From assembly GCA_024704765.1 (NCBI GenBank), contig JAKMXF010000022.1, forward strand, positions 759,055 to 823,054: a DNA stretch of 64,000 nucleotides. Direction: 5' to 3'. Each line of letters begins with the position of its first letter. The stretch's first letter is position 1. Source of the DNA: Oopsacas minuta (lineage: Eukaryota > Animalia > Porifera). The notes beneath the pieces were generated by a model. That model made no database searches, was not told the DNA's origin, and worked only from the letters and a program-made list of their open reading frames with translations. The position numbers were made by a program, and so were the translations under genes. This document shows, piece by piece, positions 454-51,738 of the stretch.

Positions 454-1735
454 ATGTCGAAAAATAAACGAGCCGTGAAGAGCCTTCTCGTGAAAGGAAT
501 TCCTAAGGAAGTTTCTAATCAAGAGCTTGGAGGTTTGTTCAGTACATTTGGTACCCTCTCAAATGTAAGTTTCTATTCGAATCCGGACAAACACTCAAAG
601 GTAGCATTTCTAACTTATTCCACAATTGAACAAGCTGATTATGCTCGACAAAACATAGAAAATTATCGATTTCCAGAATACTCACATGTACTGCATTGTT
701 TCTTTAACTATAAAGAAGATGACTCTAAATCTTATCGGTATAATAACCCTAAACATTCTAAAAAATTTCAATCAACAGCACAGAATAGTGCCTATCAGGA
801 TAATTCATTTCACGAGAATGAACATATTGATCCCGCCTCTATTCGTGTGCTAGTCACTCATGTAGAAAATGCTAGTTTTTTCTGGGGACAACCAATTTTT
901 GAGGATGATTTCATCAGGCCAGTGAAAACGATTGTGCCTATAAATGCTTACTGTCAATCAATAATGAACGGTGAAACTAATACAGAGACTGTTCTTGATC
1001 CAATTTATCACGCTGCAAAATTTGCAGACGGTAAATGGTATCGTGTAGAAATAAAGAGTAATGGAGAAGATCCAGCTAATATTCTATTTATTGACTATGG
1101 AAATTCTTCGACTGAGCGTCTGATGAATTTAATTCCTTTACCCCAACGATACTGTACTTCCCCGTTATGTTATAAATACTGTATAGGAAATACAGAAGAT
1201 ATACCTGACAGTCTGGTAACGAATAGAGAAAGGATAACTTTCTTATCTAAGATGATATTCGACAAGACTGTGTGTCTAACTAAGATACATCAACACCCTG
1301 ATGATCTTAACTGTACTGTCGTAGGTGTAACTTTGCCCTCAGCAGATGGAGGAATTAGAAATGTTGCTGAAGAGCTTAACAATTATGATCAAATTTTATC
1401 TAATTCTTATTCTTATTCTGAGAGTCAACATTCTACTATCACTCCAAGCACAAGTAATAACCCTCCTCAATATCCTAACTCTCAGTTATCTCAGACTACC
1501 ACCTCTCAATACGATAATTCTACATACTCTGCACCCCAGAGCCAATCTCAGTATCAGCAAATAACTTGTGATGCAAATCCGGTGATTGTACCGAATTATG
1601 TGAGTTCAAATACTCTCACTCTTATTTCACAAGGCACACAGCAACCCAGTCCCTTAGCTCCCTCTAACCAATTCATCTTTCCGACAACCATGTCTCAACA
1701 ACTCCATCAACAACAACCCCTTCAACATCAACATC

Positions 1736-1766
<31 letters not shown>

Positions 1767-3996
1767 TTATCCACACAACTCTGCTTTCGAATCTTACAAT
1801 ACAAACAGCTCGAGCAATCCTCTTCTTCCTATCCACTCCAATTCTGTTCAAGTTGATCAGCAGTTATGTCACCCAAATTACGATCCCTTGCACGGCCCGG
1901 AACTGATTAACAGATACAGGCAAGAGCTAGAGGATATGGATGAGAGGATGAAAGCTACCAGTGGGCGTGTGATTTCCCTTGAGACTCAAAATTCAGAATT
2001 GATGACAAAGCTAGAAGAGCTTGAGAGTCCAACAGGTTTTCAACGACTACTCGATACCATGACTGATAAATTGACAGAATTTGCTCACGCGAAAAAACAG
2101 TTATATTCCGGTCCAGATTTTAGTTGTCTGAGAGACATTGCTAATGAAGTTCTCTCCAACAGGAGTAGATTCTCTCTCAATCAGATGTCAGAGGTTGTGG
2201 AAATGCATTCTATTCAGGATCAGCTGGTTGGCTTGATAGCTCAGATCCGCTCTACCTCGGAAGGAGAGGAATGTCCCTCTCTCTCTCAGCTGATAAATCA
2301 GAGGAATGATTGTAGATGTAAACTTATTAGAAATTTGTCTTGTCTGATTGAAACGTTAGGCAATTTTCCATTAGAAGAAAGAACTGAAGAATTAAATGCA
2401 ATACATGAGCGTTTAATTCAGATCCCTGGTTACAGTCCTGAAAATGCTAAAGATATCGAATTGACTGTTTGTTTGGAAACATTTGATTCCGTTCAGTCAT
2501 TTGATATGAAAGAGTTGAAGGTTGGACAAGAAGATGAAGCAGGGCTTGATGAGTTATGTGCTAAGCTACATGTCTCTTTCAAATATTTTACCAAGTTACT
2601 GACCTTGGATCCAAGCGAAGAGATTGGAGAGGAGAAAGTTGAGAATGCTAGTGAGCTGATTCATAAGATTATCCAAACAGCTGATTGCGAAATAGCCGGA
2701 TTGAAGATGATGGAAGATATCCAGTCTGAGAGATGGAATACAGCTAGTTCCAGTCTCACTAATGCAGTAGCATATGAACTGGAGAGAGAGCTAGCAGAAG
2801 TACAGTCTATTAAAACATCTCTCCTGCCTAGACTTAAGAATGAACTTGAATTACTCAAGGACTGGGATGCTAATCCTCCCTCTTTAACCAAGTTACAACT
2901 GAACAGGAAGGAAATCAAGAAATTGAGAGCTGATCTTAGACACTTGAGGGTCGACATGAGAGAAGCTCTTGAAGATTCAGATATATATAATCTAGGTGAT
3001 ATTCAGATAAACATCAATACACTTCTCGCAAAATTCCACCAGTCATTGTTGACTGAACACGAGCAGATGTTGATCATCTCGAAACAATTTCACTCACATT
3101 TTTCAGAACTCTTTATCTTATATCCTGATCTCCCTTTTGCGCGGCAAGTTGAATTTGGACCGATTTACATGCACTCCTGGGAAGTGGACTATTTTGGTAA
3201 TTGTACAGAGATATCAATCTTTCCTGAGCCTACGAATTTGACCACTTTCAACCAAGAGAATTGTCTTTTGAGGGAAATTAAATTTTCTGACCATGATCAA
3301 CAATCAATTCTCGTTACTAACGTTAATAAACTCATCCAAATCGAACATCATTCCGTATTGAAATGTGATGCTATGTTCTTCAATAAGCCGAATACCAAAG
3401 CTTTTCTGAAACATCCTATGATTGAGGGTACAAATATTTTAGATTATATTCAGTCAGAAAAATCTTGCCGCTTATCAACTAAATTCTTATTATCGGAGAT
3501 TCTACACGGCCTAATGGCTATTCATAGTTCTGGACTTTATTGCCGATATTTAACAGAGAAGGACATATTCGTGAATTCATCTAGCGTATTAATTACAGGA
3601 ATTGAGCTCCAATCTGAAGCATCTGGTCCAGAGCTACACGCATATCACAGAAATGACTTATTTAACTTTTGCACTCTAATTCTATCTCTCTTCTATTGCT
3701 ATAAAAGAGATTTTATCGATTCTCGTGTGGGCGATTGTAACATTGAAGGTATCGTCAAGACTTCAGGGCTTAATGAAGAAACTATGAAATTCGCTCTCTA
3801 TGTTTTAAATGAATCGTCCACCCCATCCAGCCTTGTTGATCACCCATATTTTGACCAGCTTTCCAATACCGTTTCAACTTGCGAGAGAGAAGCTACTGAA
3901 CTCGTAGAAACTTCTATAATATTAGAATTTCAACCTGAGAATCCAGAAGGAGATGATGAGGAAGTTGAGAAACTTATGAATAACGATTCTCATTGA
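454..3996 (+). CDS. STK31: RRM-Tudor-coiled-coil-pseudokinase protein, STK31/TDRD8-like (1180 aa, intronless)
   Basis: N-terminal RRM (LLVKGIP...VAFLTY). Extended Tudor (VTHVENASFFWGQ...AKFADGKWYRV...LFIDYGN). Q/S/T-rich linker, long helical region, C-terminal kinase-like fold (FLLSEILHGLMAIHSSG, LVDHPYF) lacking the VAIK/HRD/DFG motifs. Orthology inferred from domain architecture only. Confidence 0.7.
1735..1764 (+). repeat. (CAA)10 microsatellite encoding polyQ
   Basis: Ten perfect CAA units in frame within the 454-3996 ORF. Confidence 0.95.
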
Positions 3997-4195
3997 TATG
4001 TGATCTATTAGTTATTTAGTTTTACTTTCTTATATTCGAGTATCCCAAATAATATTGGCAGTATTGTGATTAGTTTTGTATCTACTACTCTATACTGTAG
4101 ATCTGGAAAATTCCATGGTTAAAGGTCTGGGCTTGCAAAACGACAGGTCGACTAATAGTTCGTGCACCGTGTACTTTCTTTTCATGGGTCATAGA

Positions 4196-4518
4196 CAGGG
4201 TTGCCGTGGGAATGGGAATCGTAGTTATCCTATGGGATTTCCCACGTGTGAATCCCATGAGAATTTCTATAGGATTCCCATTTTAGAGGATTCGTTTCCC
4301 ATTCCCACGGCAACCTTGTAATAAAGACAGAATAATAATTAATAAGAATAGAATAATAATAGCATCATTGTGAAGGCACTCAAAGTCGAAAGTAGATATT
4401 ATAAGATATCCTATAGGATTTGGAATTCCCATTGGATTCCATATGGAATTTCAGGATTCCCACAGAAATCTTGTAGGAATGGAATGGGATTTGAAATTCC
4501 TTTCCCACGGCAATCCTG
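4196..4518. mobile_element. Compound TIR MITE (hAT-like CAGGGTTGCC termini)
   Basis: Left TIR cagggttgccgtgggaatgggaa at 4196. Its reverse complement occurs ending at 4318 and again (ttcccacggcaatcctg) ending at 4518. Outer flanks gggtcataga / gactcataga resemble a degraded TSD. Confidence 0.7.
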
Positions 4519-15020: not shown

Positions 15021-15204
15021 CTCTTAAGAAGAAAAATAATTTCAATGAATACATTCGTTTATAGTTTCATTGTTTGATAATGAATTCTTTTCAATTAAAT
15101 GGTTCTAGATCTTTGTGGTAAGAATCCAATAATACAATGCTACTACTTTACACTTTAAAATGTGTATAATCACAGTATAAAGTAAATACTTTGTTCTTCA
15201 ATTA

Positions 15205-15261
15205 CAGCGGAGTTCGCTTATTAACAAGTCGTATTACTAATTTCCCTTGCTAATATGCAAA
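15205..15261. mobile_element. Tc1/mariner(pogo)-like MITE end
   Basis: ta-cagcggagttcgcttattaacaag...tttcccttgctaatatgcaaa. Inverted homologue at 34786-34846 and a related end at about 28857. Confidence 0.6.
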
Positions 15262-16916
15262 CTTCCTATTAGAGAGACTATTTCCAATGCGAATGTACTT
15301 TACATCTCTAAAAAACTTGCTGCTATGCTATTAAATGAGTGGAAATAGCGGAATATCATACTTACTGCACAAAATCTTATTAAAAACAGAATTATTTTTC
15401 ACAATTTGCAAACTCACAGTCTTGATTGTTGAGGAAAAGCCATTAGTAACAGCAAGATAGCTGTTACAGTTGGGAGTATCTTCATTTTCACCTAAAACAG
15501 ATATTTTAAATTTCATGTGAATCTGATATACATGTTCTGATTTATATAGAATTCAGTTAAATAATTTATTATCTCAACCAATTCAGTAATACACATTGTA
15601 TCAATTATCATTTATACTTATCAATAGGTTAATATCAATTAATTATTATTATGGCTTCATCCATTCTTGTTGGAATTTGATTATCTTAAATTATTTAGTA
15701 TTAGAGGATTTTTGGTATTCAATAAATTTCGGTATGAACACACTTAATAGGTAATCGGACATGTACATATGGTTCCTATTCTCTCCTTATATTAGTATTG
15801 GAATTTGCACTAAATTTGAAACATTAGAATTATGGCAGAATCAAAATTATAGTTTGCAAACAATTTATTATTAATATATTACCTTTTTGAAATAATTAAC
15901 TGTATTAGAACTGTAGATATTTCAATTTTTTACTGGTTAGTCAAAACACTGTATTTATATGTGAGCTGAGCTTCAATTGGATTTATAGTGGACATGATTG
16001 ACGTACAATTTTCGTTAGAAATACTGCAACTTAAGCGGTTTAGTGAATTACTTACTTACCCATTTTGTGATGGTACAATTTGGAGATTATTCCAAAAGAT
16101 TTGATGATGTAAACTTAGATGAATTTCTGTCTACGATTAGCGGAGCACATTATAGGGTATCAAACAATCTTTCTGCTATTTGACACATTTTTACTGTCCA
16201 ATACACAATTATTGACAAAATACAACTAATCCAAACTATAGCCTATTGTATAGGTTTATCATATCTTGTTTTGCCAATTTAGTTAAGTTTAATTAGCAAA
16301 CAGGATGTTATATTAGTTAATTAGTTCAGGCCAAAACTGATTACATTCTAAAACCTTTCAAAAACATTTCGTAAATCGATGGTACCCAGAATTATTGTAA
16401 TTAGTAGAATTACATACATATCGTGTCAAGTAATATTTTCTAATAATTTTTGGCTAAATATTGATAAAATTGGGAAACAATATCTTACCTGTTTATGAAT
16501 CTAGCTGTATCTTATTTCTACAAATGAATCTTCAAAATGTATATAAAATGATTTTTAAGTATATATGTAATTTGCTGGTAATAATAAATGAAGAAATTAT
16601 TTCAATTCTTGTGCATATTGTAGTAGACCTTTATATATGTGAAAATAATATAGAAACAGCTTAGAGTATCTCAATTAATACTTATAATGAACAGTTGTGT
16701 AAAATGAGGTGAAATGCACTGATTGTAATTTCTTCATTTATCATATCTGGTAATTCTAGTAGTTTTATGGTCAGAAAGCTTAATTATTAATTAGACTAAC
16801 ATTCTGGTACATTAATCATTTACCAGAACAGCTGTGAGTTTCAAAATTTAGCAATGGCCACCTAAGGTCAGTGAATATTTTATTCATTTTCATCTTTTAT
16901 TGTATTTGATTAGAAC

Positions 16917-17035
16917 CAAAGTTGAAACCGATCAAACCGAATATCAGTATTCATGAATAGCAACCCAACCAAATACTGATATTATTCGGTTTGGACCAAC
17001 CGAATACCGAATACTGATATTCGGTTGCAACCTTG
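16917..17035. mobile_element. hAT-like MITE, family A, copy 2
   Basis: TIRs caaagttgaaaccga / tcggttgcaaccttg. 8-bp flanks attagaac / gttagaac match 7/8. Homologous to 260-344. Confidence 0.8.
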
Positions 17036-20000
17036 GTTAGAACTATATATATATATACAAATTTAAAACAGGTCAAAGAAAATATGACCGAACATAGCAA
17101 TCCATTCAAACCAAAACTTGTGTATATGTTCGCTAACCAAAAGGGTACAATTTTTATATAAATGTCTGGGTTATAGTAGAAATCTCAGAGCGAGAAGGCA
17201 GCGATAAACATTTGCCTTAAAATTTAATCGCGATTATAATAGGAAGATGAGTCGACGATCGAAAGAGAGAGAAGGAAACTGCCTCTTCTTCCTCCTCAAT
17301 GCTAATTAAGCCCTTGAATGTATATATTATTTAACTAGTAAATTCATTAATTGCAAGTTCTGTATAATAGCCGAAGTGAAGTGTGATTATTTATTATATT
17401 AATACGTTAATCAAGTTGCACTATCTACGATTTGGCATACAACTTTGATAATATGACTGATTGGCCCTTGTATAATGTACCATTCGCAAATACAACTATT
17501 TTAGATGTCTACTCCAAAATATGTTAATTGATTGTTAACATTTAAAAGGAGCTATATGATTTGATTTGATTGTTTTATTGATAGTTTACAAATTAGGTAA
17601 TATTGGTCGATATATTACTTTTTTATTGTTAGGAGTTTAAAAAGCAGCAACGCAGCAGATATTAAATAGTTGGCATTATTCACTATTAATAATGAAATTG
17701 GATAGTTTCCATTATTTTTTGAAATATAACCGATTTTGTAACCATTTGATATAATCAAAATAGTAATTACTAGAATTGTTGATTGAATTAGTAAGCTATC
17801 ACTCGTTTATAACTGTTGATTCGACATAATTCTGATCATTCTGAATTGTGTAATCGTGCTCTTTTATTTAGGTTAATTGATTGCTGTAGCCGCACAGGGG
17901 GTACAACTAAACCCAGGGACATCAGAAGCAAAAAATCATTGGTGCGGCAGTCATCACATGCCTCAAAGATGGATTCTGTCAGCTTTTCTATGGATCGAAC
18001 CTACAGGGTGGTTAACAATTTCAAACTATCGCCCAATCCGTGAGTCGAAATCTTGATCGGTTCTATCTATGAACTACCTGGCATGAATATTTCCCCTGCC
18101 AGGTTGCATGTCTAAGCCTAACAATAATTATGTCTAGCCAAGGGCAAATGCTGGCAAATTCCCCATTTCCCCCCCTGGGACCGCCGCTGTGTTAGTCCGA
18201 CCACTGATAAGTAACTTCAATACTCGCTGATTCGTTATAGAGTATTGTTTATTTGCAAATTTATTGAGAGAACTCGCAAAACAACCTGGGACACTCTTGA
18301 GTATTCATTATTTCAATATTCAATCATCATTATTAGTTAATTAAGGCTTGTTGTACTTATCTGATATGATAAGAATGTCGAGAGAGCATATTTCTATACA
18401 TTATATACGTAATTCGAAATAGACGACTTTTGACGCTAGCCTGGCAGAGACAAATAATTAATAAATAATGGAAGACCCGCTCTCCCTCATGAACGTTCTA
18501 TAATAAGAAATATTATGTAATTGGAATTGCCTTGCTTTTGTCGTAACCTCCTGATACATTCAACTAGACGCTTAGCTTTCCATACAATTAATTACACACA
18601 AATATGCCCACTTTTCTACTTGACCATCATGCATTTGATAGAAAATACTTATGAGACACAATTTACGGCAGCTGTGTGTAATATCTTGGTTAGTTTCATA
18701 ATTAATTTCTAGGAGTTATTATTTATTTAATTATTTAACAGAGTTATCTACTTTTGACTACTCAGGAATGTGTTATCCAGACTAATTTGTTAATATCCTT
18801 TAGTTGTAATTAAATGAAATGTACCACATATCATAATTCATTAAGTAAGTAGTCAATAGTTCTAGTAACCTTTTTGATAATTCAAAAGATCTCCCACTCA
18901 GTAATCAATAAATTCTGGCACAGTGTGGAACTATGCGGTAATAGGTGAAAGTTGACTTCGCTATTTACCAAAATTAATATGTGCATTCGATTTTAGACTA
19001 TTTCAAACCTAGAAATATGACATTATTAGATACTTAATGAACTTATGTCTAACCAAAGTATCAAACTTAGGTTAAAATTTAAAAACCTGAAAACAACAAT
19101 TATTTATTCTTCAATACTCTTTGCGATATTTCAACATCCCAGGATTTTCAGTAATTCATGGCATTTATCAGTATTCGTATACATTATGTGATGATTAATT
19201 TTAACTCGCTTGCAAAACAAATGAAATCTTTATTTTTTCATTCTCAAACATTTTTAGCCGTCTATTTTTATCCATATTTCAGCTCCTTGACATACCTTTT
19301 AGGTCCCCGATCTTATAATGCAAACAATTGCGAGTTGAATAGTTAACAATTTCGCGTAGTATATCTTTCTAAATTTCATTTTCAATAATTTCTAGACCCG
19401 CCCAAAGGCGCCCACTTATACTTTTCTTGACATTAAGTGAATGGGGCACACCCATTCGGATGAAATTTATTTTTAGAAATATTCCATTTCGTTAGAACAT
19501 TTTATAATTACAGCATTTCCAATTCATTAGTATCATTTTATTAAGTATCCAATGCAGAATTGAATGCAGTATAGGCATTGTTATTCAAGTTCCTCAATAA
19601 ATAGGGCTGGTTGGTATAAACACTCACAAATTTACAACTCATTTATTCTTGAACCATAATTATTAATTATATCAAAATATCACAGATTACGTCATAGTCC
19701 CATTTCCAGAAGTGCAACTAAAAATCTAGTGCCATTTTTGAAATCTACAGTGTCGATTTACTATTTATGACAACATTTTAACATATATCTTCAGTGTAAG
19801 TACCTATTACCCCATAATCGCCATTTTGCCACACTGTGGATCCGGTTTACCGCTAATTGGAATTACTTAACTGGGTTCACATGAATATGCCAAATTCCAT
19901 CTACAATTGTGAAAATATTTTAGAAGTATTCACATTCAAATATTCAAATGGAGTAAGATTATGTTTATAAGAATTTCTATCTCTTAGCAATATATTCCAT

Positions 20001-20649
20001 TACTTGTCACTCCCAAAGTGGCTTAAACCGAATGTCACTTTGAAATTACTTGAGAACGGAAGGGCTAGATGGACAGCTAAACCAGTCGGTTGGGGAGTCA
20101 TTCTCTGGACTCGATATCAAATTAGATCATATTCTGAAATTGGTTGTGTCCAAATTCCAATTCTCTTGCTCTTGTAGGAGTATTAAATGGTGTTTTCTTA
20201 TCACTAAGTACAACATTTATGTGTTGCAGTAAGTGTATTTTCAGTAAAAATCGCGCGTTTGGGCAACATGTACACCCATGTTTTTTGAATCCTGTGTAAA
20301 TTAGTGAGTACAAGTGATCCTCTCTAATTATTGCCCACTTGTTCATACATAAACCTCGTAATCGTTTTCAGGTGGAATTCTGTAAATGTAATGTAATTTG
20401 ACATTTTACACAACGGCCCACTTGACAGGCACCTGATTTTACTACACGGAACGGAGAAGTTGACTTGAGGAAAATTAAATTTGTTCACTGCCATATATTT
20501 GACTTCACAGAATGTTGTAAAACAACGGTTGTCAAGCATTTGTTAGACATTTCACGTTATGGGCAATCAATTTGTAAACCATATGTAAAAATTCAGGTAA
20601 CTCCACTTAGAAACCTTGCCACTCATAATTTCTGATGCCTTTTGCTTAG

Positions 20650-20679
20650 CTACCGAAACTGAGTTTCTAGTTTCGGTAG
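20650..20679. other. Inverted repeat 45 bp upstream of caspase-NHL copy 1
   Basis: ctaccgaaact-gagtttct-agtttcggtag: 11-bp perfect arms, 8-nt loop. Confidence 0.75.
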
Positions 20680-20724
20680 TTATAATCAACCTGAATACTC
20701 GAATTAGAATCTCTTGTGTGTAAA

Positions 20725-22392
20725 ATGGATAGAATAGTCCAGGAATACCAATACAACATAGGTTCCGCGCCCCGAGGAATTGGACTCATCATCGTGAATC
20801 ACTTTCATGGCCAAGAAAAGTCCAGGAAAGGAGCAGGGAATGAGGAAGAGAATCTGAGGCTTTTGTTCACACTTATGGGTCTGGATACCAAGGTATTCAT
20901 TGAATTAAACGCAAAGCAAATCGAGGGTAAACTTCTAGAAACTGCAGCTGCACCTCGATTGAAAACTGATTCTATGTTCGCGGTTGCTATCAGTTCCCAT
21001 GGATGTGAGGAAGGTTTGCTGGGAGTCCGAGGAGATAAAGATGACTTCATTTCTACGAACCAAATACGGAATATTTTTAACGGAAATAATTGTCCAAATC
21101 TTGCGAAAAAGCCCAAAATACTTCTGTTAAATGGCTGTAGAGGTAATGGGAATGAAGAAATAATTGAAAGCGATAATCTTTCTACCAAAAATATCCCTGA
21201 ACAATTAGCCACAACTTGGTCCGATTTCTTTACCATATATTCATGCGAATTTGGTACTGTAGCTTTACGTTCTACATACGGAGGTTCTATATTCATAGAG
21301 ATGTTCCTGGAGTGTTATAAAGCTTATGGAGCAAACCTCCCATTTGAAATGATGATGCCAATTGTAAATCGCAAATTAATGAAGACTTGCGCTGCGAAAA
21401 CTAGAAGATATCATATTGACGATGTACCTGCTACACAATCCTGCACCTGGGAATCTTCCTGCACCTGTATACTTAAAGTTGTTCCAAAAGACGCTGTAAT
21501 TAACAAAGTACCTGCTAAAATACAACCAGATGTTGATTCATTCAAACTGGTCTGGGCTACTTGCTCCAAAGGATTACAAGGTCCAAACCAAATGAGTGGT
21601 CCTAGAGGTCTACTCATCACTCCCAACGGTCAGATTTACATCTTAGATTCAGTCTCCAGATGTATCTGGGTATACTCCACTGATGGAGAACCAATGTACC
21701 AGGACATCAGTCCAAAGACGTACAAACAGCTGGTGATTGGGAACCTCGGACTAACCTACTGCTGGGGCATGTGTCTTCGAGATAACTTCCTGTTTGTATC
21801 TGGCACTCTGGCGCTGATAAAATTCTCGTTAGTGGGAGGAGGCTTATTGACTCACAAATTTCATGATGTTCCTATTTCTGGCATGGATATCGATGAGAAT
21901 GGTATAATCTATGCATGTGAACGTCAAAGCTGTAAGATCTTACTGCTAGACATGGATTTGAATGTTCTACCTGAAAAGTTGGATCTTACTCATACACTGA
22001 ATCCAGCCACTGACCGTCTGATGGATATCAAAGTGTTGGATGATCAGCTGTATATCCTTATTAATATGAATACATACATTATCCAGATATTTGACAAGAA
22101 AGGACACCATCAACGTAACCTAGTATCCAGTAAATATCTGACAGAGTGTCTCTATTTCGCGATTAACAGGACTACAAAGACCATTTTCGCAGGAGATATT
22201 GTGACGAATGAATTGAAAGCTTTCAGTGCTGATGGTGAGCTAATGTACAAGATAGGAAAACACGGTGATAAACGAGGTAACCTGATAGAACCTGCTGGAA
22301 TTGATTTGACTAATGACGGAGAGGTTGTTATCGTATCTCCTAGTAAGAACAAGTTCATGTTGCAGTGTTTCAAAGTACCTCCAGACATGTGA
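20725..22392 (+). CDS. Caspase-NHL beta-propeller fusion protein, copy 1 (555 aa from the first ATG, intronless)
   Basis: Caspase p20 (GIGLIIVN, RKGA, ISSHG with catalytic His, KPKILLLNGCRG with catalytic Cys), linker IESD/N, p10 (SDFFTIYS...ALRSTYGGSIF). C-terminal NHL-like repeats (MSGPRGLLITPNGQIYILD; LIEPAGIDLTNDGEVVIV). In-frame stop at 20692, so no prodomain in this exon. Confidence 0.9.
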   Translation: MDRIVQEYQYNIGSAPRGIGLIIVNHFHGQEKSRKGAGNEEENLRLLFTLMGLDTKVFIELNAKQIEGKLLETAAAPRLKTDSMFAVAISSHGCEEGLLGVRGDKDDFISTNQIRNIFNGNNCPNLAKKPKILLLNGCRGNGNEEIIESDNLSTKNIPEQLATTWSDFFTIYSCEFGTVALRSTYGGSIFIEMFLECYKAYGANLPFEMMMPIVNRKLMKTCAAKTRRYHIDDVPATQSCTWESSCTCILKVVPKDAVINKVPAKIQPDVDSFKLVWATCSKGLQGPNQMSGPRGLLITPNGQIYILDSVSRCIWVYSTDGEPMYQDISPKTYKQLVIGNLGLTYCWGMCLRDNFLFVSGTLALIKFSLVGGGLLTHKFHDVPISGMDIDENGIIYACERQSCKILLLDMDLNVLPEKLDLTHTLNPATDRLMDIKVLDDQLYILINMNTYIIQIFDKKGHHQRNLVSSKYLTECLYFAINRTTKTIFAGDIVTNELKAFSADGELMYKIGKHGDKRGNLIEPAGIDLTNDGEVVIVSPSKNKFMLQCFKVPPDM

Positions 22393-25085
22393 ATGTATAT
22401 GTATATACCTGTAGATCACTCATATGCCAAGGATAATATTTTGATACTAAATGTTATTTGATTGCTATTCTGTACATAATTATTTCTGCTCGTAGATTTA
22501 TGTTAACTCCCTCCAAATTATTCGTATTTCGGCCAGTAGCCGCGAATGTATGTAATTATATTGGATTATGTAATCTCTCTAAATGCTATGCTAAAACTAA
22601 TCTGCTGCTGTTAGTATTTTATCTAGCTTGACCTGTCATGATTTTTTCATTATGTTGGTTATTGTAGCTATTTTAATTGCACAATTCACCTGAATTAAAG
22701 TGTATACACAAGTACCTGTATAATTCGAAATTTTTATATCCTAAATGTTAACACTATTTGCTATGAAACTCGGTTTATATAGAAGTAACTATCAAGGCCT
22801 TTTATTTGATGGTAAATCTGATTATTTGTCTCATAGAAGTTTTCTATCTGGAGGTCTTCTTCCAGTAAATTCACTTAAAATACTTATAACCAATTATCAA
22901 CTTTATTCAAGGTATTGATATACTATACTTAGTCCGAATATTCAAAGAAGCAAAAAATATTGGGAGAAATTTTGTGATGAATTTTCTGGATATTTTTGGG
23001 AGGATTGTAAACAAGTAGTAAGTTGTTTTGATATCATATTTATTACGTTTGTGTCTAGTAATAATATACTGTTTATATATTGGCTATATACAGCTGCGTA
23101 TTGGATGGTTATACGTAGAATTTTTATAGATTTCTCACGGTAATTCCCCACACATATTAATATGATAATTATATTATCACTATTAAATATTACTATAACA
23201 CGGTAAGGAAATTACCTATAATTTTGTTGCAACAATTGAAGCCTTTTGTAATTTACATTAATCAGTTCAAATATAATTTTTGATTTTTCCAGTAATTAAT
23301 CGCTGATGATAACATTAACAAATATATAAATTCAAGTACTTATAGTAATTACGAACAAATAGATTAGTCAACTTTACGCATTAGAATTTCAAATTATGTG
23401 CGATCAAATTGAGGATTTCTCGTATCCTATGAAGGGGGACTGTCGAGGTGTTGGTATCGTTATAGTGAATCTCTTTCTGAATCAGCGTATTCATAGAGCT
23501 GGAGCTGAGTTTGAAAGAGAGAATCTGAGTCATCTGTTTACCCTCATGGGTCTTGAGGTCAGAGAATACAGTGAATTAACAAGTCACGAAATCGTGAAAT
23601 TACTTATAGAAACTGCAGCTGAGCCTCGCTTGAGAAATGATTCTATGCTCGCGGTTGCTATCAGTTCCCACGGATGTGAGGAAGGTTTGCTAGGAATAAA
23701 CGTAGAGGATCGATTGACCTGGTTGGATACCCATCAATCCGATTATAAAGATGGAAATGACTATGTTCCACCACAACAAATACGGAAGATTTTTAACGGT
23801 AAAAACTGTAAACAATTAGCCAAGAAACCAAAACTTATTCTGATGAATGGTTGTAGAGGTGGCGGGAAAGAGGAATTAATTGAAAGTGATAATATGCCAA
23901 CACAGACTATTCCTGAACAGAATGCTACAACCTGGTCTGATTTCTTTATCATACATTCTTGTGCACCTGGTAACATTGCGCTACGATCAAATATGATAGG
24001 CTCTCTATTCCTTGATGAATTCCTGAAGACATATATAGAGTTTGGCCAATATCTTCCATTTGAAATGATGATGCCAATTGCAAATCGTAAAGTTATCATG
24101 ACTAGTTCGTCTAAGAAAAATACTATTTCAGCACAATCCTGCACCTGGGAATCTTCCTGCACCTGTATACTTAAAGTTGTTCCAAAAGACGCTGTAATTA
24201 ACAAAGTACCTGCTAAAATACAACCAGATGTTGATTCATTCAAACTGGTCTGGGCTACTTGCTCCAAAGGATTACAAGGTCCAAACCAAATGAGTGATCC
24301 TAGCGGTCTACTCATCACTCCCAACGGTCAGATTTACATCTTAGATTCAGTCTCCAGATGTATCTGGGTATACTCCACTGATGGAGAACCAATGTACCAG
24401 GACATCAGTCCAAAGACGTACAAACAGCTGGTGATTGGGAACCTCGGACTAACCTACTGCTGGGGCATGTGTCTTCGAGATAACTTCCTGTTTGTATCTG
24501 GCACTCTGGCGCTGATAAAATTCTCGTTAGTGGGAGGAGGCTTATTGACTCACAAATTTCATGATGTTCCTATTTCTGGCATGGATATCGATGAGAATGG
24601 TATAATCTATGCATGTGAACGTCAAAGCTGTAAGATCTTACTGCTAGACATGGATTTGAATGTTCTACCTGAAAAGTTGGATCTTACTCATACACTGAAT
24701 CCAGCCACTGACCGTCTGATGGATATCAAAGTGTTGGATGATCAGCTGTATATCCTTATTAATATGAATACATACATTATCCAGATATTTGACAAGAAAG
24801 GACACCATCAACGTAACCTAGTATCCAGTAAATATCTGACAGAGTGTCTCTATTTCGCGATTAACAGGACTACAAAGACCATTTTCGCAGGAGATATTGT
24901 GACGAATGAATTGAAAGCTTTCAGTGCTGATGGTGAGCTAATGTACAAGATAGGAAAACACGGTGATAAACGAGGTAACCTGATAAAACCTGCTGGAATT
25001 GATTTGACTAATGACGGAGAGGTTGTTATCGTATCTCCTAGTAAGAACAAGTTCATGTTGCAGTGTTTCAAAGTACCTCCAGACA
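21434..25085 (+). repeat. 954-bp near-identical direct repeat (21434-22387 vs 24132-25085)
   Basis: Offset 2698 bp. By-eye comparison finds only 3 mismatches: 21599/24297, 21606/24304 and 22288/24986. Confidence 0.93.
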
Positions 25086-25105
25086 AGTTAGATAATAGCG
25101 ATTAA
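23396..25105 (+). CDS. Caspase-NHL beta-propeller fusion protein, copy 2 (569 aa, intronless)
   Basis: Same architecture: RAGA, ISSHG, KPKLILMNGCRG, IESD/N, SDFFIIHS...ALRSNMIGSLF, then an NHL region almost identical to copy 1. In-frame upstream stop at 23360. Confidence 0.9.
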   Translation: MCDQIEDFSYPMKGDCRGVGIVIVNLFLNQRIHRAGAEFERENLSHLFTLMGLEVREYSELTSHEIVKLLIETAAEPRLRNDSMLAVAISSHGCEEGLLGINVEDRLTWLDTHQSDYKDGNDYVPPQQIRKIFNGKNCKQLAKKPKLILMNGCRGGGKEELIESDNMPTQTIPEQNATTWSDFFIIHSCAPGNIALRSNMIGSLFLDEFLKTYIEFGQYLPFEMMMPIANRKVIMTSSSKKNTISAQSCTWESSCTCILKVVPKDAVINKVPAKIQPDVDSFKLVWATCSKGLQGPNQMSDPSGLLITPNGQIYILDSVSRCIWVYSTDGEPMYQDISPKTYKQLVIGNLGLTYCWGMCLRDNFLFVSGTLALIKFSLVGGGLLTHKFHDVPISGMDIDENGIIYACERQSCKILLLDMDLNVLPEKLDLTHTLNPATDRLMDIKVLDDQLYILINMNTYIIQIFDKKGHHQRNLVSSKYLTECLYFAINRTTKTIFAGDIVTNELKAFSADGELMYKIGKHGDKRGNLIKPAGIDLTNDGEVVIVSPSKNKFMLQCFKVPPDKLDNSD

Positions 25106-25485: not shown

Positions 25486-25758
25486 ATGAGCTCTACATCA
25501 CAGAAACACCGTAACTTCGTGTGTGAACCTATGGGAGACAAAGATGTAAGAGAGTTAGCTGGTATCGGAGACGTTCTCTCAGGGAGATTAGCTGAGAAAG
25601 GTTTCGATAAGGCATTTGTTGTTCTTGGGCAATTCTTGTTACTTAAGAAGAATGAGGAATTATTTAAAGATTGGCTGAAAGAGAGTTGTGGTGCAAACTC
25701 TAAACAATCTCATGATTGTTACAGCTGTCTTAGCGAGTGGTGTAATTCATTTATTTAA
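25486..25758 (+). CDS. BANF1: Barrier-to-autointegration factor
   Basis: [24 protein letters not shown]...[17 protein letters not shown]; 90 aa. Confidence 0.98.
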
Positions 25759-26318
25759 TGATATGCTACAACTACACAGTCAAACTCTCATTATTCTATC
25801 ATATACATGTACTGTTATCATAAATTGATCTGTTATGCTAGAATATGCTAGATTAAGAGTCTACATTTCATTTATGTACTCAGAGAGTGATACAGTCGAT
25901 GTTTAATTAATAGGGTTACATCGGGACCTGGCCATTTTGACCTAATTAATCGGATTATATGTGTTAGCCTGAGTTGATTAATATCATTTGTATGCCTCTG
26001 TTTATGGCCAACTGAGATAATTGATCTGTGGCTCAATATACGAAACTCCTTGAAAGCGATACATAAATATTATGAACAATCGAACTCCTGTTATATCGAA
26101 CACGGATATATCAAAATACCCGGTTATACCGGAGTCTTAAATTGTACAAATATGGTCAAATCGTCAAATTATATTCAAAATGAATCTAATTCAGTTATAA
26201 ATGTAAATTTATTGGAAGTTGGTATCTGATATGTCAATCCGTAAATTCTCACAGTTGTACGTATTGGATATATCATATATGTATATAAAACCTTGTAAAT
26301 TATCAGTTATATTCAATT

Positions 26319-27008
26319 ATGGAAAAATTATGGATCTGTCTCTTCGCCATTTTTCTATTTATAGTAGCTAATGCTGCTCTACGAGAACTGCAACTTGAAC
26401 CAGAGGACACAAAATTTGATCATCTCACGTTCACACAATTCTGGGCTCCAGAAGCATGCAGAAGCATAGATCCACGTTGTAAATTTACTAACGTATCCTC
26501 CGATTGGACTATCCATGGTCTCTGGCCTACCATGGGGAACACACACGGGCCGGCACATTGCACGAATGAGAGTTTTAATCAAAGTCTGCTGACAGCTGAT
26601 ATGTTGAAATTTATGGATAAATATTGGATAACTTATGTGAAATACGAACCTAATCCTAGCTTCTGGGAGCATGAGTGGATCAAACATGGAACATGTGCAG
26701 TGGATGGTGACAAGACTGAGTTTCTTAACCAGAAATCTTATTTTCAAACTACAATTAATCTATACAATAAGTATAATATAAGTACCATTTTAACGAAAGC
26801 GAATATTAAGCCGGGTATGAGTAGGCCATTGGATGATTTCTTAAATGCCTTTAAAACAAGTGAGATTGGAAAGACTGTGAGATTGGATTGTAACGGAGTA
26901 TTCTTGCTAGATGTAGAGATATGTTTTAATTTATCTCTGCAACCTATCGACTGTACAAGCCCTACTGGTTGTTCTTCTAAGAAGAATGTTAGCTACGAAC
27001 CATACTGA
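26319..27008 (+). CDS. RNASET2: Secreted/lysosomal ribonuclease T2
   Basis: Signal peptide, CAS I (WTIHGLWP), CAS II (FWEHEWIKHGTC), conserved cysteines. Confidence 0.96.
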   Translation: MEKLWICLFAIFLFIVANAALRELQLEPEDTKFDHLTFTQFWAPEACRSIDPRCKFTNVSSDWTIHGLWPTMGNTHGPAHCTNESFNQSLLTADMLKFMDKYWITYVKYEPNPSFWEHEWIKHGTCAVDGDKTEFLNQKSYFQTTINLYNKYNISTILTKANIKPGMSRPLDDFLNAFKTSEIGKTVRLDCNGVFLLDVEICFNLSLQPIDCTSPTGCSSKKNVSYEPY

Positions 27009-51216: not shown

Positions 51217-51738
51217 TCAAGTCACGAGTATAAATTTGATGCAACTATAACCAATTTTCACTGGCATGGTCAGGATCGCTAAAGTGATCATAAAGAAGAA
51301 AAACAACCAGGAAACGAATCCACTTAGTATCTGGATTTGTCTGGTTTGAGAAACTTCGATTGGTTGGAAAGGATTGGGTTTACCTATTAGGAAGCGTCTG
51401 TCTGAACCGCTACTCCCAAAATTATCGACCTGACAGTCTGGCTTGCTGTTTTTCCTCGCTATGATTGTCTTAGCCAGCTCCCTGTGCTGAATGCAACTAC
51501 TATCACTTTGCAGGGTCTCCAAGAATGGCTCGAAGTCCCTTCTCTCTTTTTCAAGATGCTTCACCAGCTCGATGTTCTGTTTCTTGGTGCTGTAAATGTT
51601 CCCTATCTTCTCTCTCTCATCCTCCTTCATTACACCCGCATTTACAAGTCCATGGCTAATCTTTGTGAAATCTAACTTATTTACTATGAACAGTTCATAA
51701 GTACGGAAATTCTTGTATGATTCTGTATTACAACCCAT
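51217..51738 (-). CDS. Small death-fold (CARD-like) protein with a hydrophobic C-terminal tail (173 aa unspliced)
   Basis: Residues ~8-95 follow the CARD helical pattern (IVNKLDF..I...LVNAGVM...E.EKI.....T..QN.EL...L....DFEPFLETL....H.ELA). C-terminal ILSGFVSWLFFFFMITLAILTMPV. The ATG is directly preceded by an in-frame TAA. Confidence 0.7.
   Translation of the reverse strand: MGCNTESYKNFRTYELFIVNKLDFTKISHGLVNAGVMKEDEREKIGNIYSTKKQNIELVKHLEKERRDFEPFLETLQSDSSCIQHRELAKTIIARKNSKPDCQVDNFGSSGSDRRFLIGKPNPFQPIEVSQTRQIQILSGFVSWLFFFFMITLAILTMPVKIGYSCIKFILVT

Follow-up and report, generated by a model that had tools for sequence, protein, structure and literature searches.

Two adjacent glass-sponge genes encode prodomain-less caspases fused to a TRIM2/3-like NHL propeller

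Nearly all that is understood of caspase activation in animals concerns N-terminal death folds (CARD, DED) and adaptor platforms. Two neighbouring genes of Oopsacas minuta raise the question of how a caspase would be switched on when an intact animal-type protease carries a C-terminal TRIM2/3-like propeller in lieu of a death fold. The window analysed here, a stretch of 64,000 nucleotides, contains the following genes and domains:

20725..22392, + strand: ORF1, the upstream paralogue, a caspase–NHL fusion of 555 aa in a single exon (window ORF and Pfam)
20764..21468, + strand: ORF1 caspase domain, aa ~14-248 (Pfam, family alignment), with R34, H92, N136 (which replaces caspase Gln283), C138 and R182, the linker aspartate D150 (IESD), and the last strand QSCTWESS starting at Q238
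21541..22380, + strand: ORF1 six-bladed NHL propeller, aa ~273-552 (Pfam, profile, structure matches)
23396..25105, + strand: ORF2, the downstream paralogue, a caspase–NHL fusion of 569 aa in a single exon (window ORF, Pfam, AF2)
23435..24166, + strand: ORF2 caspase domain, aa ~14-257 (Pfam, alignment, AF2), with R34, H92, N151, C153, R197 and Q247, and the linker aspartate D165 (IESD) inside the low-confidence AF2 loop 157-176
24239..25078, + strand: ORF2 six-bladed NHL propeller, aa ~282-561 (Pfam, AF2, structure matches)

The ORF1 protein has an exact match on record from O. minuta (assembly GCA_024704765.1, scaffold JAKMXF010000022.1). Neither ORF is interrupted by a stop between caspase and propeller, and a flexible linker of ~25 residues separates the two halves. 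A preliminary description of this DNA had reported two ORFs with a complete caspase followed by a C-terminal NHL propeller of ~280 aa, and this architecture is borne out by Pfam, alignment, AF2 modelling and superposition. It had also presented the ORFs as intronless. Both are indeed single-exon, but so are most genes of the O. minuta genome (PMC10282587), and the trait does not set them apart. The pair consists of adjacent, separately trans-spliced, expressed single-exon genes, and both products are cytosolic, prodomain-less C14A caspases of animal type with a TRIM2/3-like six-bladed NHL propeller.

Pfam assigns Peptidase_C14 (PF00656) to the two ORFs with E values of 3e-30 and 4e-26. The catalytic His in SHG, the Cys in GCRG and the S1 arginines in RxGA and ALRS, all listed in the preliminary description, are present in both ORFs: R34 lies in R-x-G-A, H92 in SSHG, the cysteine in NGCRG and the second S1 arginine in ALRS, which align with Arg64, His121, Cys163 and Arg220 of caspase-6, respectively. 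In a family alignment of 25 sequences, the His, the Cys and the first S1 Arg are invariant and the second S1 Arg is kept in at least 90%. Every family member has Asn for Gln (Gln283 of QACRG) in the pentapeptide NGCRG. With the His/Cys dyad intact and both S1 arginines in place, the equivalents of Arg179 and Arg341 that give a basic pocket for P1 Asp, the caspases are complete and, judging from sequence, apparently active. An Asp with a hydrophobic P4 (IESD, IEGD, IECD and similar) lies within the disordered loop of 20 of the 25 members and is a putative intersubunit processing site. The last beta-strand is strongly conserved as QSCxWESxCT, and C249, W251 and S253 are invariant in the family alignment. 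The N-terminal half of the AF2 model superposes on caspase-3/-7/-9 with TM by target of 0.80-0.86 (Foldseek) and on caspase-2/-3/-6/-8 atlas clusters with rmsd of 2.6-3.2 A over ~235 residues. This half has the caspase/hemoglobinase fold, with p20-like and p10-like parts, and its nearest relatives in sequence are caspase-2, -6 and -3.

Neither ORF has a Pfam match to CARD or DED, and the caspase fold begins at about residue 14. In-frame stops lie 33 nt (ORF1) and 36 nt (ORF2) upstream of the ATGs. The leader is joined at these acceptors:

20706..20707, + strand: AG trans-splice acceptor of ORF1, 18 nt before the ATG, to which the leader ...AAAAAACTTAC(AG) is joined (RNA-like run)
23361..23384, + strand: three alternative AG trans-splice acceptors of ORF2 (23361/2, 23366/7 and 23383/4), 12-35 nt before the ATG (RNA-like run)

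One leader is common to all four acceptors, and its sequence is absent from the window. Each leader junction corresponds to one assembled contig of run X4, which is taken as RNA from its depth contrast and adaptor type; its depth is 1200-4500 in the unique caspase-coding halves and 30-113 between the genes. Trans-splicing has been reported in glass sponges (PMC10282587). With the leader attached 12-35 nt ahead of each start codon, the transcripts gain no CARD- or DED-coding exon. The earlier statement that the proteins have no CARD or DED therefore stands, an upstream exon being excluded by the leader junctions as far as this run shows.

The C-terminal half matches the NHL repeat (PF01436) at 25.5 and 25.8 bits (cut-off 20), with one matching stretch per protein, and in ORF1 also the DUF5128 6-bladed propeller at 23.1 bits (cut-off 22.9). 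The AF2 model has a mean pLDDT of 82.7, mostly 85-95 over residues 283-559, where it forms ~25 strands. Residues 277-565 superpose on 6-bladed NHL propeller clusters over 273 residues with an rmsd of 3.3 A and TM by row of 0.73, and the C-terminal region is thus a propeller of six four-stranded blades. The relative orientation of caspase and propeller is not reliable in this model (pTM 0.52). Among NHL domains, the family profile matches TRIM2 (5e-32) and TRIM3 (1.5e-28) best, followed by Thin, TRIM71 and Brat. The propeller resembles the NHL domains of TRIM2 and TRIM3, and also those of Thin, TRIM71/LIN-41 and Brat, in being six-bladed and in its profile and structural match to TRIM2 clusters. 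However, the fusions have no RING, B-box, coiled-coil or filamin module, their propeller follows a protease, and several of their blades have no recognisable NHL motif. Because only Peptidase_C14 lies N-terminal to the propeller, the fusions are not members of the TRIM-NHL family despite the related propeller.

The tandem pair recurs in synteny in at least four further glass-sponge assemblies, giving five syntenic loci with O. minuta, and lies in a conserved block with BAF, RNase T2, Kelch, KIN17 and MutS. Two of these genes follow it directly in the window:

25486..27008, + strand: downstream neighbours BAF (25486-25758) and RNase T2 (26319-27008)

The pair is an old syntenic locus of glass sponges. 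A second, divergent caspase–propeller locus is nested in an intron of RRP40. The copy number is two to a few per genome, with no sensor-like expansion at the tandem locus. Propeller dN/dS is 0.08-0.17 in most between-locus comparisons, and the propeller evolves more slowly than the protease half; by this substitution pattern it is under purifying selection. It is also mildly acidic by composition (pI 5.9-6.1, D+E exceeding K+R). Together, purifying selection and mild acidity are easier to reconcile with a conserved partner than with an RNA ligand or a fast-evolving pathogen one. The partner is more likely to be conserved, whether a protein or some other molecule, than to be a fast-evolving factor from a pathogen. 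The preliminary description had suggested RNA or a pathogen protein as the ligand, in which case the fusion would be a one-component immune protease whose propeller binds RNA or a microbial molecule directly to cause cell death. Some TRIM-NHL propellers (Brat, LIN-41/TRIM71) do bind RNA, by a basic top face, and are matched by the family profile, bacterial caspase–repeat fusions exist and many caspase–WD40 proteins are listed in the Atlas and AFDB, and death/immunity fusions are expanded in sessile marine invertebrates (PMC8195603). A conserved microbial pattern may also serve as such a ligand. However, the suggestion fits poorly with the slow evolution and slightly acidic net charge of the propeller, with its nearest solved relatives being TRIM2/3 rather than the RNA binders Brat or LIN-41, and with the low copy number; we regard it as very improbable. 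The broader proposal of a sensor-protease in which a ligand would drive dimerisation and activation is plausible.

The two genes share their propellers to a degree that their caspase halves do not. The shared segment is present as two copies:

21436..22386, + strand: conversion tract copy 1, from the last caspase strand to the second-to-last codon
24134..25084, + strand: conversion tract copy 2

The copies are 951 nt long and have three internal differences, none synonymous and too few for a selection test. Exact repeats of ~950 nt are a classic cause of assembly collapse or duplication, so that the fusion or the duplicated propeller might come from mis-assembly or mis-annotation. This is scarcely credible, because three DNA-like runs show an approximate doubling of k-mer depth over the tract, which two real copies would give, the tandem arrangement and uninterrupted ORFs recur in four other independently assembled genomes, and no stop separates the domains. 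Across seven loci, within-locus identity is 92.6-98.9% for propellers and 45-68% for caspase halves. Consistently, within-locus dS is 0-0.15 for propellers, whereas it is ~1 or saturated for caspase halves (five loci at the DNA level). In trees, caspase halves cluster by paralogue type and propellers by locus. Forcing the upstream-position genes into one clade is acceptable for the caspase halves (p-AU 0.32) but rejected for the propellers (delta lnL 827, p 1e-61). The trees confirm a recurrent gene conversion, restricted to one domain, by which the paired propellers are kept near-identical while the protease halves diverge.

Such a pattern could arise by neutral concerted evolution, in which the fusion is functional but the identity of its propellers has no special meaning: conversion would homogenise whatever stays similar enough, and the caspase halves would have escaped only by prior divergence past the homology threshold. 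The tracts reach exactly as far as homology does, to the stop codon, and neither the 3' nor the 5' flanks are related; the 5' edge differs among loci (alignment column ~265 versus ~300). Within-locus propeller differences fall at generally variable columns, and therefore nothing in them points to selection. However, the outcome is confined to the same domain in seven loci, over divergences large enough to saturate synonymous sites. The caspase halves must have diverged first and the propellers not, an order that calls for selection to differ between the halves, and we consider a purely neutral origin rather unlikely. As a case of concerted evolution confined to one domain of a two-domain gene pair the locus is clean, and it is relevant to how tandem paralogues can divide one function between them and keep another in common.

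The reading that we favour, at slightly less than an even chance, is that the propeller takes over the role of CARD or DED by docking the zymogen on a conserved partner or platform for activation by proximity. Docking would raise the local concentration of the zymogen and so promote dimerisation via the conserved last beta-strand, accompanied by processing at the linker Asp. Having propellers of the same type, the two paralogues would be brought to one partner, where homo- or heterodimers of differing catalytic halves could form. In favour of recruitment we count the architecture with an intact active site and no prodomain, expression, the TRIM2/3-like type of the propeller, the five syntenic loci, the low propeller dN/dS, the shared propeller and the conserved last strand. 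Counted against it are three points: intersubunit linker length and the IESD site are effector-caspase-like; the tandem arrangement may produce the conversion pattern as a neutral side effect, with sequence divergence setting its 5' limit; and the domain orientation in the AF2 model is unreliable.

Effector caspases are constitutive dimers that are switched on by upstream cleavage, not by recruitment. Ligand-driven activation has an equally concrete rival in an effector caspase that carries a targeting domain. The fusions would then be constitutive dimers activated when an upstream initiator cleaves the IESD linker, and the NHL propeller would have no part in activation but, as an exosite or localisation domain, would direct the active protease to particular substrates or cell structures. 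The nearest matches in sequence and fold include caspase-6 and -3 alongside caspase-2, the loop between the subunits is short and has an I-E-x-D site resembling the IETD of caspase-3, and purifying selection on the propeller suits a fixed endogenous target. Moreover, NHL domains of the TRIM2/3 type are protein-interaction modules. However, no upstream initiator is linked to the pair, the conserved last strand and shared propeller are equally expected under recruitment, and an exosite and a recruitment module look alike in sequence. We consider this possible but doubtful. Recruitment by the propeller can be extended to an apoptosome in one chain, in which the cis-fused NHL propeller activates the caspase, gene conversion forces one shared propeller on the paralogues, and these heterodimerise on a single conserved ligand, by a death-fold-independent route that is old in animals and possibly common to rotifer caspase–NHL proteins; in this full form it is distinctly unlikely. 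The architecture is kept by purifying selection across glass sponges, a group whose branch is among the earliest in animals. Should the propeller prove to be the activation module, induced proximity can be wired through a quite different domain, and the fusions offer a simple two-domain test protein.

In the literature searched, no description of an animal caspase–NHL fusion was found, in agreement with the preliminary description. The architecture itself is not absent from catalogues: O. minuta P0039 is deposited as 'caspase-9-like', and the ESM Atlas holds a rotifer cluster of 67 members named 'Caspase family p20 domain-containing protein' (PF00656+PF01436+PF25021, 546 aa), alike in Pfam architecture and length, so that the fusion stands in databases under automatic names. 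The rotifer cluster is a feature-space look-alike only (score 0.88); no named rotifer protein is among the 150 best matches of an exhaustive profile search, and the fusion members among those 150 are ENA/Logan proteins or from O. minuta. What is new here is that 'intronless' is normal for the genome, the synteny of the tandem pair together with the RRP40-intron locus, and the domain-restricted gene conversion.

Look-alikes of the fusions in the Atlas and AFDB are mostly of the bacterial caspase–repeat kind, in which a caspase-like protease is likewise followed by C-terminal WD40, TPR or other repeats. Structural alignments to these AFDB proteins have only 10-13% identity. The likeness noted in the preliminary description holds as a functional analogy but not by descent, because both halves are animal-type. 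A prokaryotic origin was considered and rejected, as the best protease matches in sequence and structure are animal caspases and the gene is embedded in a conserved animal synteny block of an animal genome; sequence, structure matches and synteny show no sign of horizontal origin.

The fusions share with C14A caspases (caspase-2, -6, -3/-7) the fold, the His/Cys dyad in SHG and xxCRG, both S1 arginines, an I-E-x-D site in the loop between the subunits, and a GSxF motif that follows the second Arg. In contrast to them, the fusions have an N-peptide of no more than ~13 residues without CARD or DED, Asn for Gln283, a 300-residue C-terminal extension with the propeller, and a Cys/Trp-rich last-strand motif of their own. 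The N-terminal CARD or DED of death-fold initiator and inflammatory caspases is missing by Pfam, upstream stops and leader sites alike. Caspase-8, caspase-10 and cFLIP are tandem paralogues with a common recruitment module that meet on one platform and can heterodimerise via diverged protease domains, and they offer an analogy for the pair. However, their module is a pair of N-terminal DEDs and cFLIP lacks catalytic activity, whereas the O. minuta pair keeps its catalytic residues and shares a C-terminal propeller maintained by gene conversion. By the analogy proposed here, the fusions would resemble the Apaf-1/caspase-9 apoptosome and death-fold platforms in coupling a beta-propeller module to caspase activation by induced proximity. 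The WD40 propeller of the apoptosome is on a separate STAND ATPase that recruits the caspase by CARD–CARD contacts, whereas in O. minuta propeller and caspase are joined in cis, and neither an NTPase nor a death fold is present.

Two caspase genes lie in tandem on the forward strand of the window, each with an NHL-type propeller fused C-terminally to the protease, and two small genes follow them:

20725-22392, forward strand, ORF1, caspase-NHL protein of 555 aa
23396-25105, forward strand, ORF2, caspase-NHL protein of 569 aa
25486-25758, forward strand, BAF homologue of 90 aa, directly downstream of the pair
26319-27008, forward strand, RNase T2 with a hydrophobic N-terminus, directly downstream of the pair

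ORF calls and a Pfam search bear out the two caspase-NHL reading frames of the preliminary description. Peptidase_C14 is found in both (E 3e-30 and 4e-26), together with the 6-bladed-propeller family DUF5128 and a single NHL repeat that passes the gathering score. Every motif quoted in that description is present: R34 in R-x-G-A, H92 in SSHG, C138/C153 in NGCRG and R182/R197 in ALRS. These catalytic and S1 residues align with Arg64, His121, Cys163 and Arg220 of caspase-6 (HMMER), and IESD lies within the intersubunit loop.

The window also encodes actin, a Tudor-RRM protein, a VWA receptor, a Kelch protein, KIN17, a MutS homologue with short introns, a CLIP-170-like protein, NOL6/Nrap, a kinase and a FYVE protein. 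Among named proteins, the best match to the Nrap homologue comes from Mytilus, at 31% identity, which says little about taxonomy. The exact ORF1 protein is on record for O. minuta scaffold JAKMXF010000022.1; a rotifer origin was rejected on this ground, and the caspase expansion of bdelloids has no bearing here. Glass-sponge genomes are compact, and 9,872 of the 16,340 O. minuta genes are single-exon (PMC10282587). Because the neighbours are ordinary animal genes and single-exon genes are usual in this species, a viral, bacterial or horizontally transferred origin for the many long ORFs was rejected. For the same reason, the earlier remark that both caspase-NHL genes are intronless is correct but carries no information in itself. 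The RNase T2 is probably secreted, and the position of BAF and RNase T2 after the pair is kept in 5/5 syntenic loci. Between the VWA receptor gene and ORF1 lies an AT-rich stretch of 5.6 kb (15055-20724, GC 0.30-0.32) without long ORFs; a gap of comparable size occurs in L004, a locus fetched for comparison. A 173-aa ORF at 51217-51738 on the reverse strand matches CARD weakly (E 0.004; its 17.5 bits fall short of the cut-off of 23.9).

ORF1 and ORF2 share 59% identity across their caspase halves and 99% across their propeller halves. The identical DNA tract runs from Gln238/Gln247 (21436 and 24134) to the second-to-last codon (22386 and 25084) and is interrupted by three internal substitutions, G292D, R294S and E522K, with zero synonymous changes. 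Upstream of the tract the third-position identity is 0.4-0.8, and the 5' and 3' flanks of the two genes are unrelated. That all three differences are non-synonymous is true but statistically empty, being expected with a probability of about 0.4 by chance.

Extensive interspecies microsynteny is known in glass sponges (PMC10282587). The tandem pair is found in four other assemblies in the same order: VWA ... pair, BAF, RNase T2, Kelch, KIN17 and MutS. Across seven loci, the within-locus identity is 92.6-98.9% for the propellers versus 45-68% for the caspase halves, and the between-locus propeller identity is 73-90%. By the Nei-Gojobori method, within-locus dS is 0.00, 0.03, 0.10, 0.10 and 0.15 for the propellers and ranges from 0.94 to saturated for the caspase halves; between loci, propeller dS is 0.2-2.4. 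In trees, caspase halves from different genomes cluster by paralogue type (support 95-100), and the propellers cluster by locus (support 93-100). Trees constrained to hold all upstream-position genes together are acceptable for the caspase halves (p-AU 0.32); for the propeller halves they are rejected (delta lnL 827, p about 1e-61). These contrasts in identity, dS and topology show that the duplication is old and that gene conversion has repeatedly and independently homogenised the propellers. On its 5' side the tract ends at different places from locus to locus, as expected for separate conversion events. This domain-restricted concerted evolution, as read from the alignments and trees, is the most solid new result.

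The window is covered by four sequencing runs from one sample, none of the runs listed being labelled RNA-Seq. Three show a flat, DNA-like depth that is about twice as high over 21.5-22.35 kb, as two real copies of the 950-nt repeat would give. The transcript evidence comes from the fourth, RNA-like run, X4, whose depth is 1200-4500 in the unique caspase-coding halves of ORF1 and ORF2 versus 30-113 between these two genes; we infer that X4 is an RNA run. No internal joints in either ORF were found in X4. That the fusion or the duplicated propeller is an artefact can be regarded as excluded. Contigs assembled from X4 share one non-genomic 5' sequence, a putative leader ending ...AATCTTCATAAAAAACTTAC(AG). 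ORF1 receives it at 20706 and ORF2 at 23361, 23366 and 23383 (three alternative acceptors), each junction lying exactly on a genomic AG and being represented by one assembled contig. The leader sequence is absent from the 64-kb window; a gene for it was sought there and in the 8 fetched loci and not found. A leader joined at genomic AGs 12-35 nt before each ATG is the signature of spliced-leader trans-splicing, and a trans-spliced leader has been reported in glass sponges (PMC10282587). The ATGs of ORF1 and ORF2 are preceded by in-frame stops at distances of 33 and 36 nt. Given the RNA status inferred for X4, the junctions and stops leave no space for a CARD or DED exon and indicate two separate mRNAs. 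The Pfam search likewise detected no death fold in either ORF, so the absence of CARD and DED claimed from the sequence stands.

The best solved relatives of the protease half by sequence are caspase-2, -6 and -3, with E values between 3e-23, obtained for a circularly permuted caspase-2 construct, and about 1e-15. The best matches in fold are caspase-3/-7/-9 (TM by target 0.80-0.86), and the rmsd to the caspase-2/-3/-6/-8 clusters is 2.6-3.2 A. Across 25 aligned family sequences, the invariant positions include the catalytic His and Cys, the first S1 Arg and an Asn replacing caspase Gln283; the second S1 Arg is retained in at least 90%. The caspases of ORF1 and ORF2 are thus apparently active, judging from these residues. 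Family N-termini are short wherever credible, and the last caspase strand, QSCxWESxCT, ranks with the best-conserved segments. An intersubunit-loop Asp with a hydrophobic P4 residue is found in 20/25 members. Conservation of a cleavage Asp at the boundary between caspase and propeller was considered and dropped, since just ~12/17 close members have such an Asp. The main rival to the reading preferred below, possible though somewhat unlikely, is an effector-type caspase that is switched on by an upstream protease and uses its propeller as a targeting exosite.

The C-terminal half is confirmed as an NHL propeller. A single propeller sequence matches TRIM3/TRIM2 at about 1e-19, and the family profile matches TRIM2 (5e-32), TRIM3 (1.5e-28), Thin (1e-22), TRIM71 (about 1e-21), Brat (4e-14) and NHLRC2 (merely 2e-7). 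In the AF2 model (mean pLDDT 82.7), residues 283-559 form about 25 strands, and only residues 157-176 (intersubunit loop) and 269-278 (inter-domain linker) are disordered. When the stretch 277-565 is superposed on 6-bladed NHL propellers, 273 residues align at 3.3 A.

Between loci, propeller dN/dS is 0.08-0.17, reaching 0.31-0.43 for the closest pair. With dN of 0.06-0.23 versus 0.08-0.56, the propeller evolves at a lower rate than the protease half. In the protease halves of L004 and L006, the closest loci, dN/dS is about 0.6-0.8 (dS 0.28-0.36, dN 0.22), versus 0.3-0.4 in their propellers; in this lineage the catalytic half, not the binding half, evolves faster. Within-locus propeller differences sit at columns that are variable anyway, and their recurrence at the same columns (permutation p 0.006) arises because those columns are generally variable. 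The three non-synonymous differences between ORF1 and ORF2 are too few to weigh in an argument about selection. The homogenisation of the propellers could be neutral in part, which we estimate as possible but unlikely. The propeller is mildly acidic (pI 5.9-6.1). Such properties seem unlike those of a pathogen sensor under rapid diversification or of a basic face that binds RNA, and they fit a conserved partner. The RNA or pathogen protein proposed as ligand in the preliminary description is therefore a poor fit to a slowly evolving, mildly acidic propeller; sensing of this kind is less favoured and quite improbable.

What the sequences establish is an expressed (X4), prodomain-less and apparently active caspase with a fused TRIM2/3-like propeller, present as two paralogues with one shared propeller. 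Our preferred reading, held tentatively and with a little less than even confidence, is that the propeller is a docking module in place of the death fold and that proximity activates both paralogues. Docking would lead the caspases to dimerise via the conserved last strand and to be processed at the linker Asp, and the shared propeller would allow both paralogues to reach the same partner.

A word-indexed search found 29 relatives with the caspase-NHL architecture. Among the matches listed from an exhaustive profile search, the only new Pfam-confirmed members were P0030 and P0032; P0039, P0046 and, more weakly, P0045 were also recovered, their C-terminal halves being unrecognised by Pfam. Many two-stretch matches, at first candidates for CARD-caspase-NHL proteins, turned out to be tandem double-caspase proteins without NHL. 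P0039, from O. minuta, is the sole named family member among the matches listed, deposited as 'caspase-9-like isoform X3'. Its alignment to the family profile spans 485 columns, and its C-terminus independently matches the propeller-only profile (probability 97%, E 3e-11). The genes of P0039 and its counterpart are placed as follows:

L007 10001-11971 (O. minuta scaffold 133), P0039 gene, nested in an RRP40 intron
L011 6001-7815, P0046 gene, positional orthologue of P0039, nested in an RRP40 intron

Both lie inside the exosome gene RRP40, with its N-terminal/S1 exons on one side and its KH exon on the other, and the flanking Snf7, TMEM70, SPRY and mitochondrial S5 genes are kept in the two glass-sponge genomes. 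No synteny was found between the P0039 locus and the window, so P0039 is a separate locus; with P0046 it marks a second, divergent and old caspase-propeller locus, whose propeller has diverged beyond recognition by Pfam. All unnamed family members whose contigs were examined come from assemblies sharing gene order with O. minuta, so their sources are glass sponges. The caspase-propeller linker is about 130 residues long in P0039, and very long and of low complexity in P0024, P0025 and P0026 (629-911 aa), with PT repeats in P0025. In a related glass-sponge assembly, a stand-alone NHL propeller of 302 aa (L001 787-1695, reverse strand; PF01436 E 2e-17) lies ~4 kb from the caspase-NHL gene P0018 and could be a donor, partner or decoy of the fused propellers.

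An animal caspase-NHL fusion is not described in the literature searched, and the earlier statement to that effect holds within this scope. The proteins are already public under automatic names. The nearest ESM Atlas look-alike (score 0.88) is a rotifer cluster with the same Pfam architecture as the sponge family. Fusions that join caspases to unusual modules recur among marine invertebrates in general (PMC3196919; PMC8195603). A tie to the vertebrate CASP7-NHLRC2 adjacency was set aside, as the propeller matches NHLRC2 at just about 1e-7. The suggested analogy with bacterial caspase-repeat fusions holds for architecture only; both halves of ORF1 and ORF2 match animal proteins and, by these matches, are of animal type.
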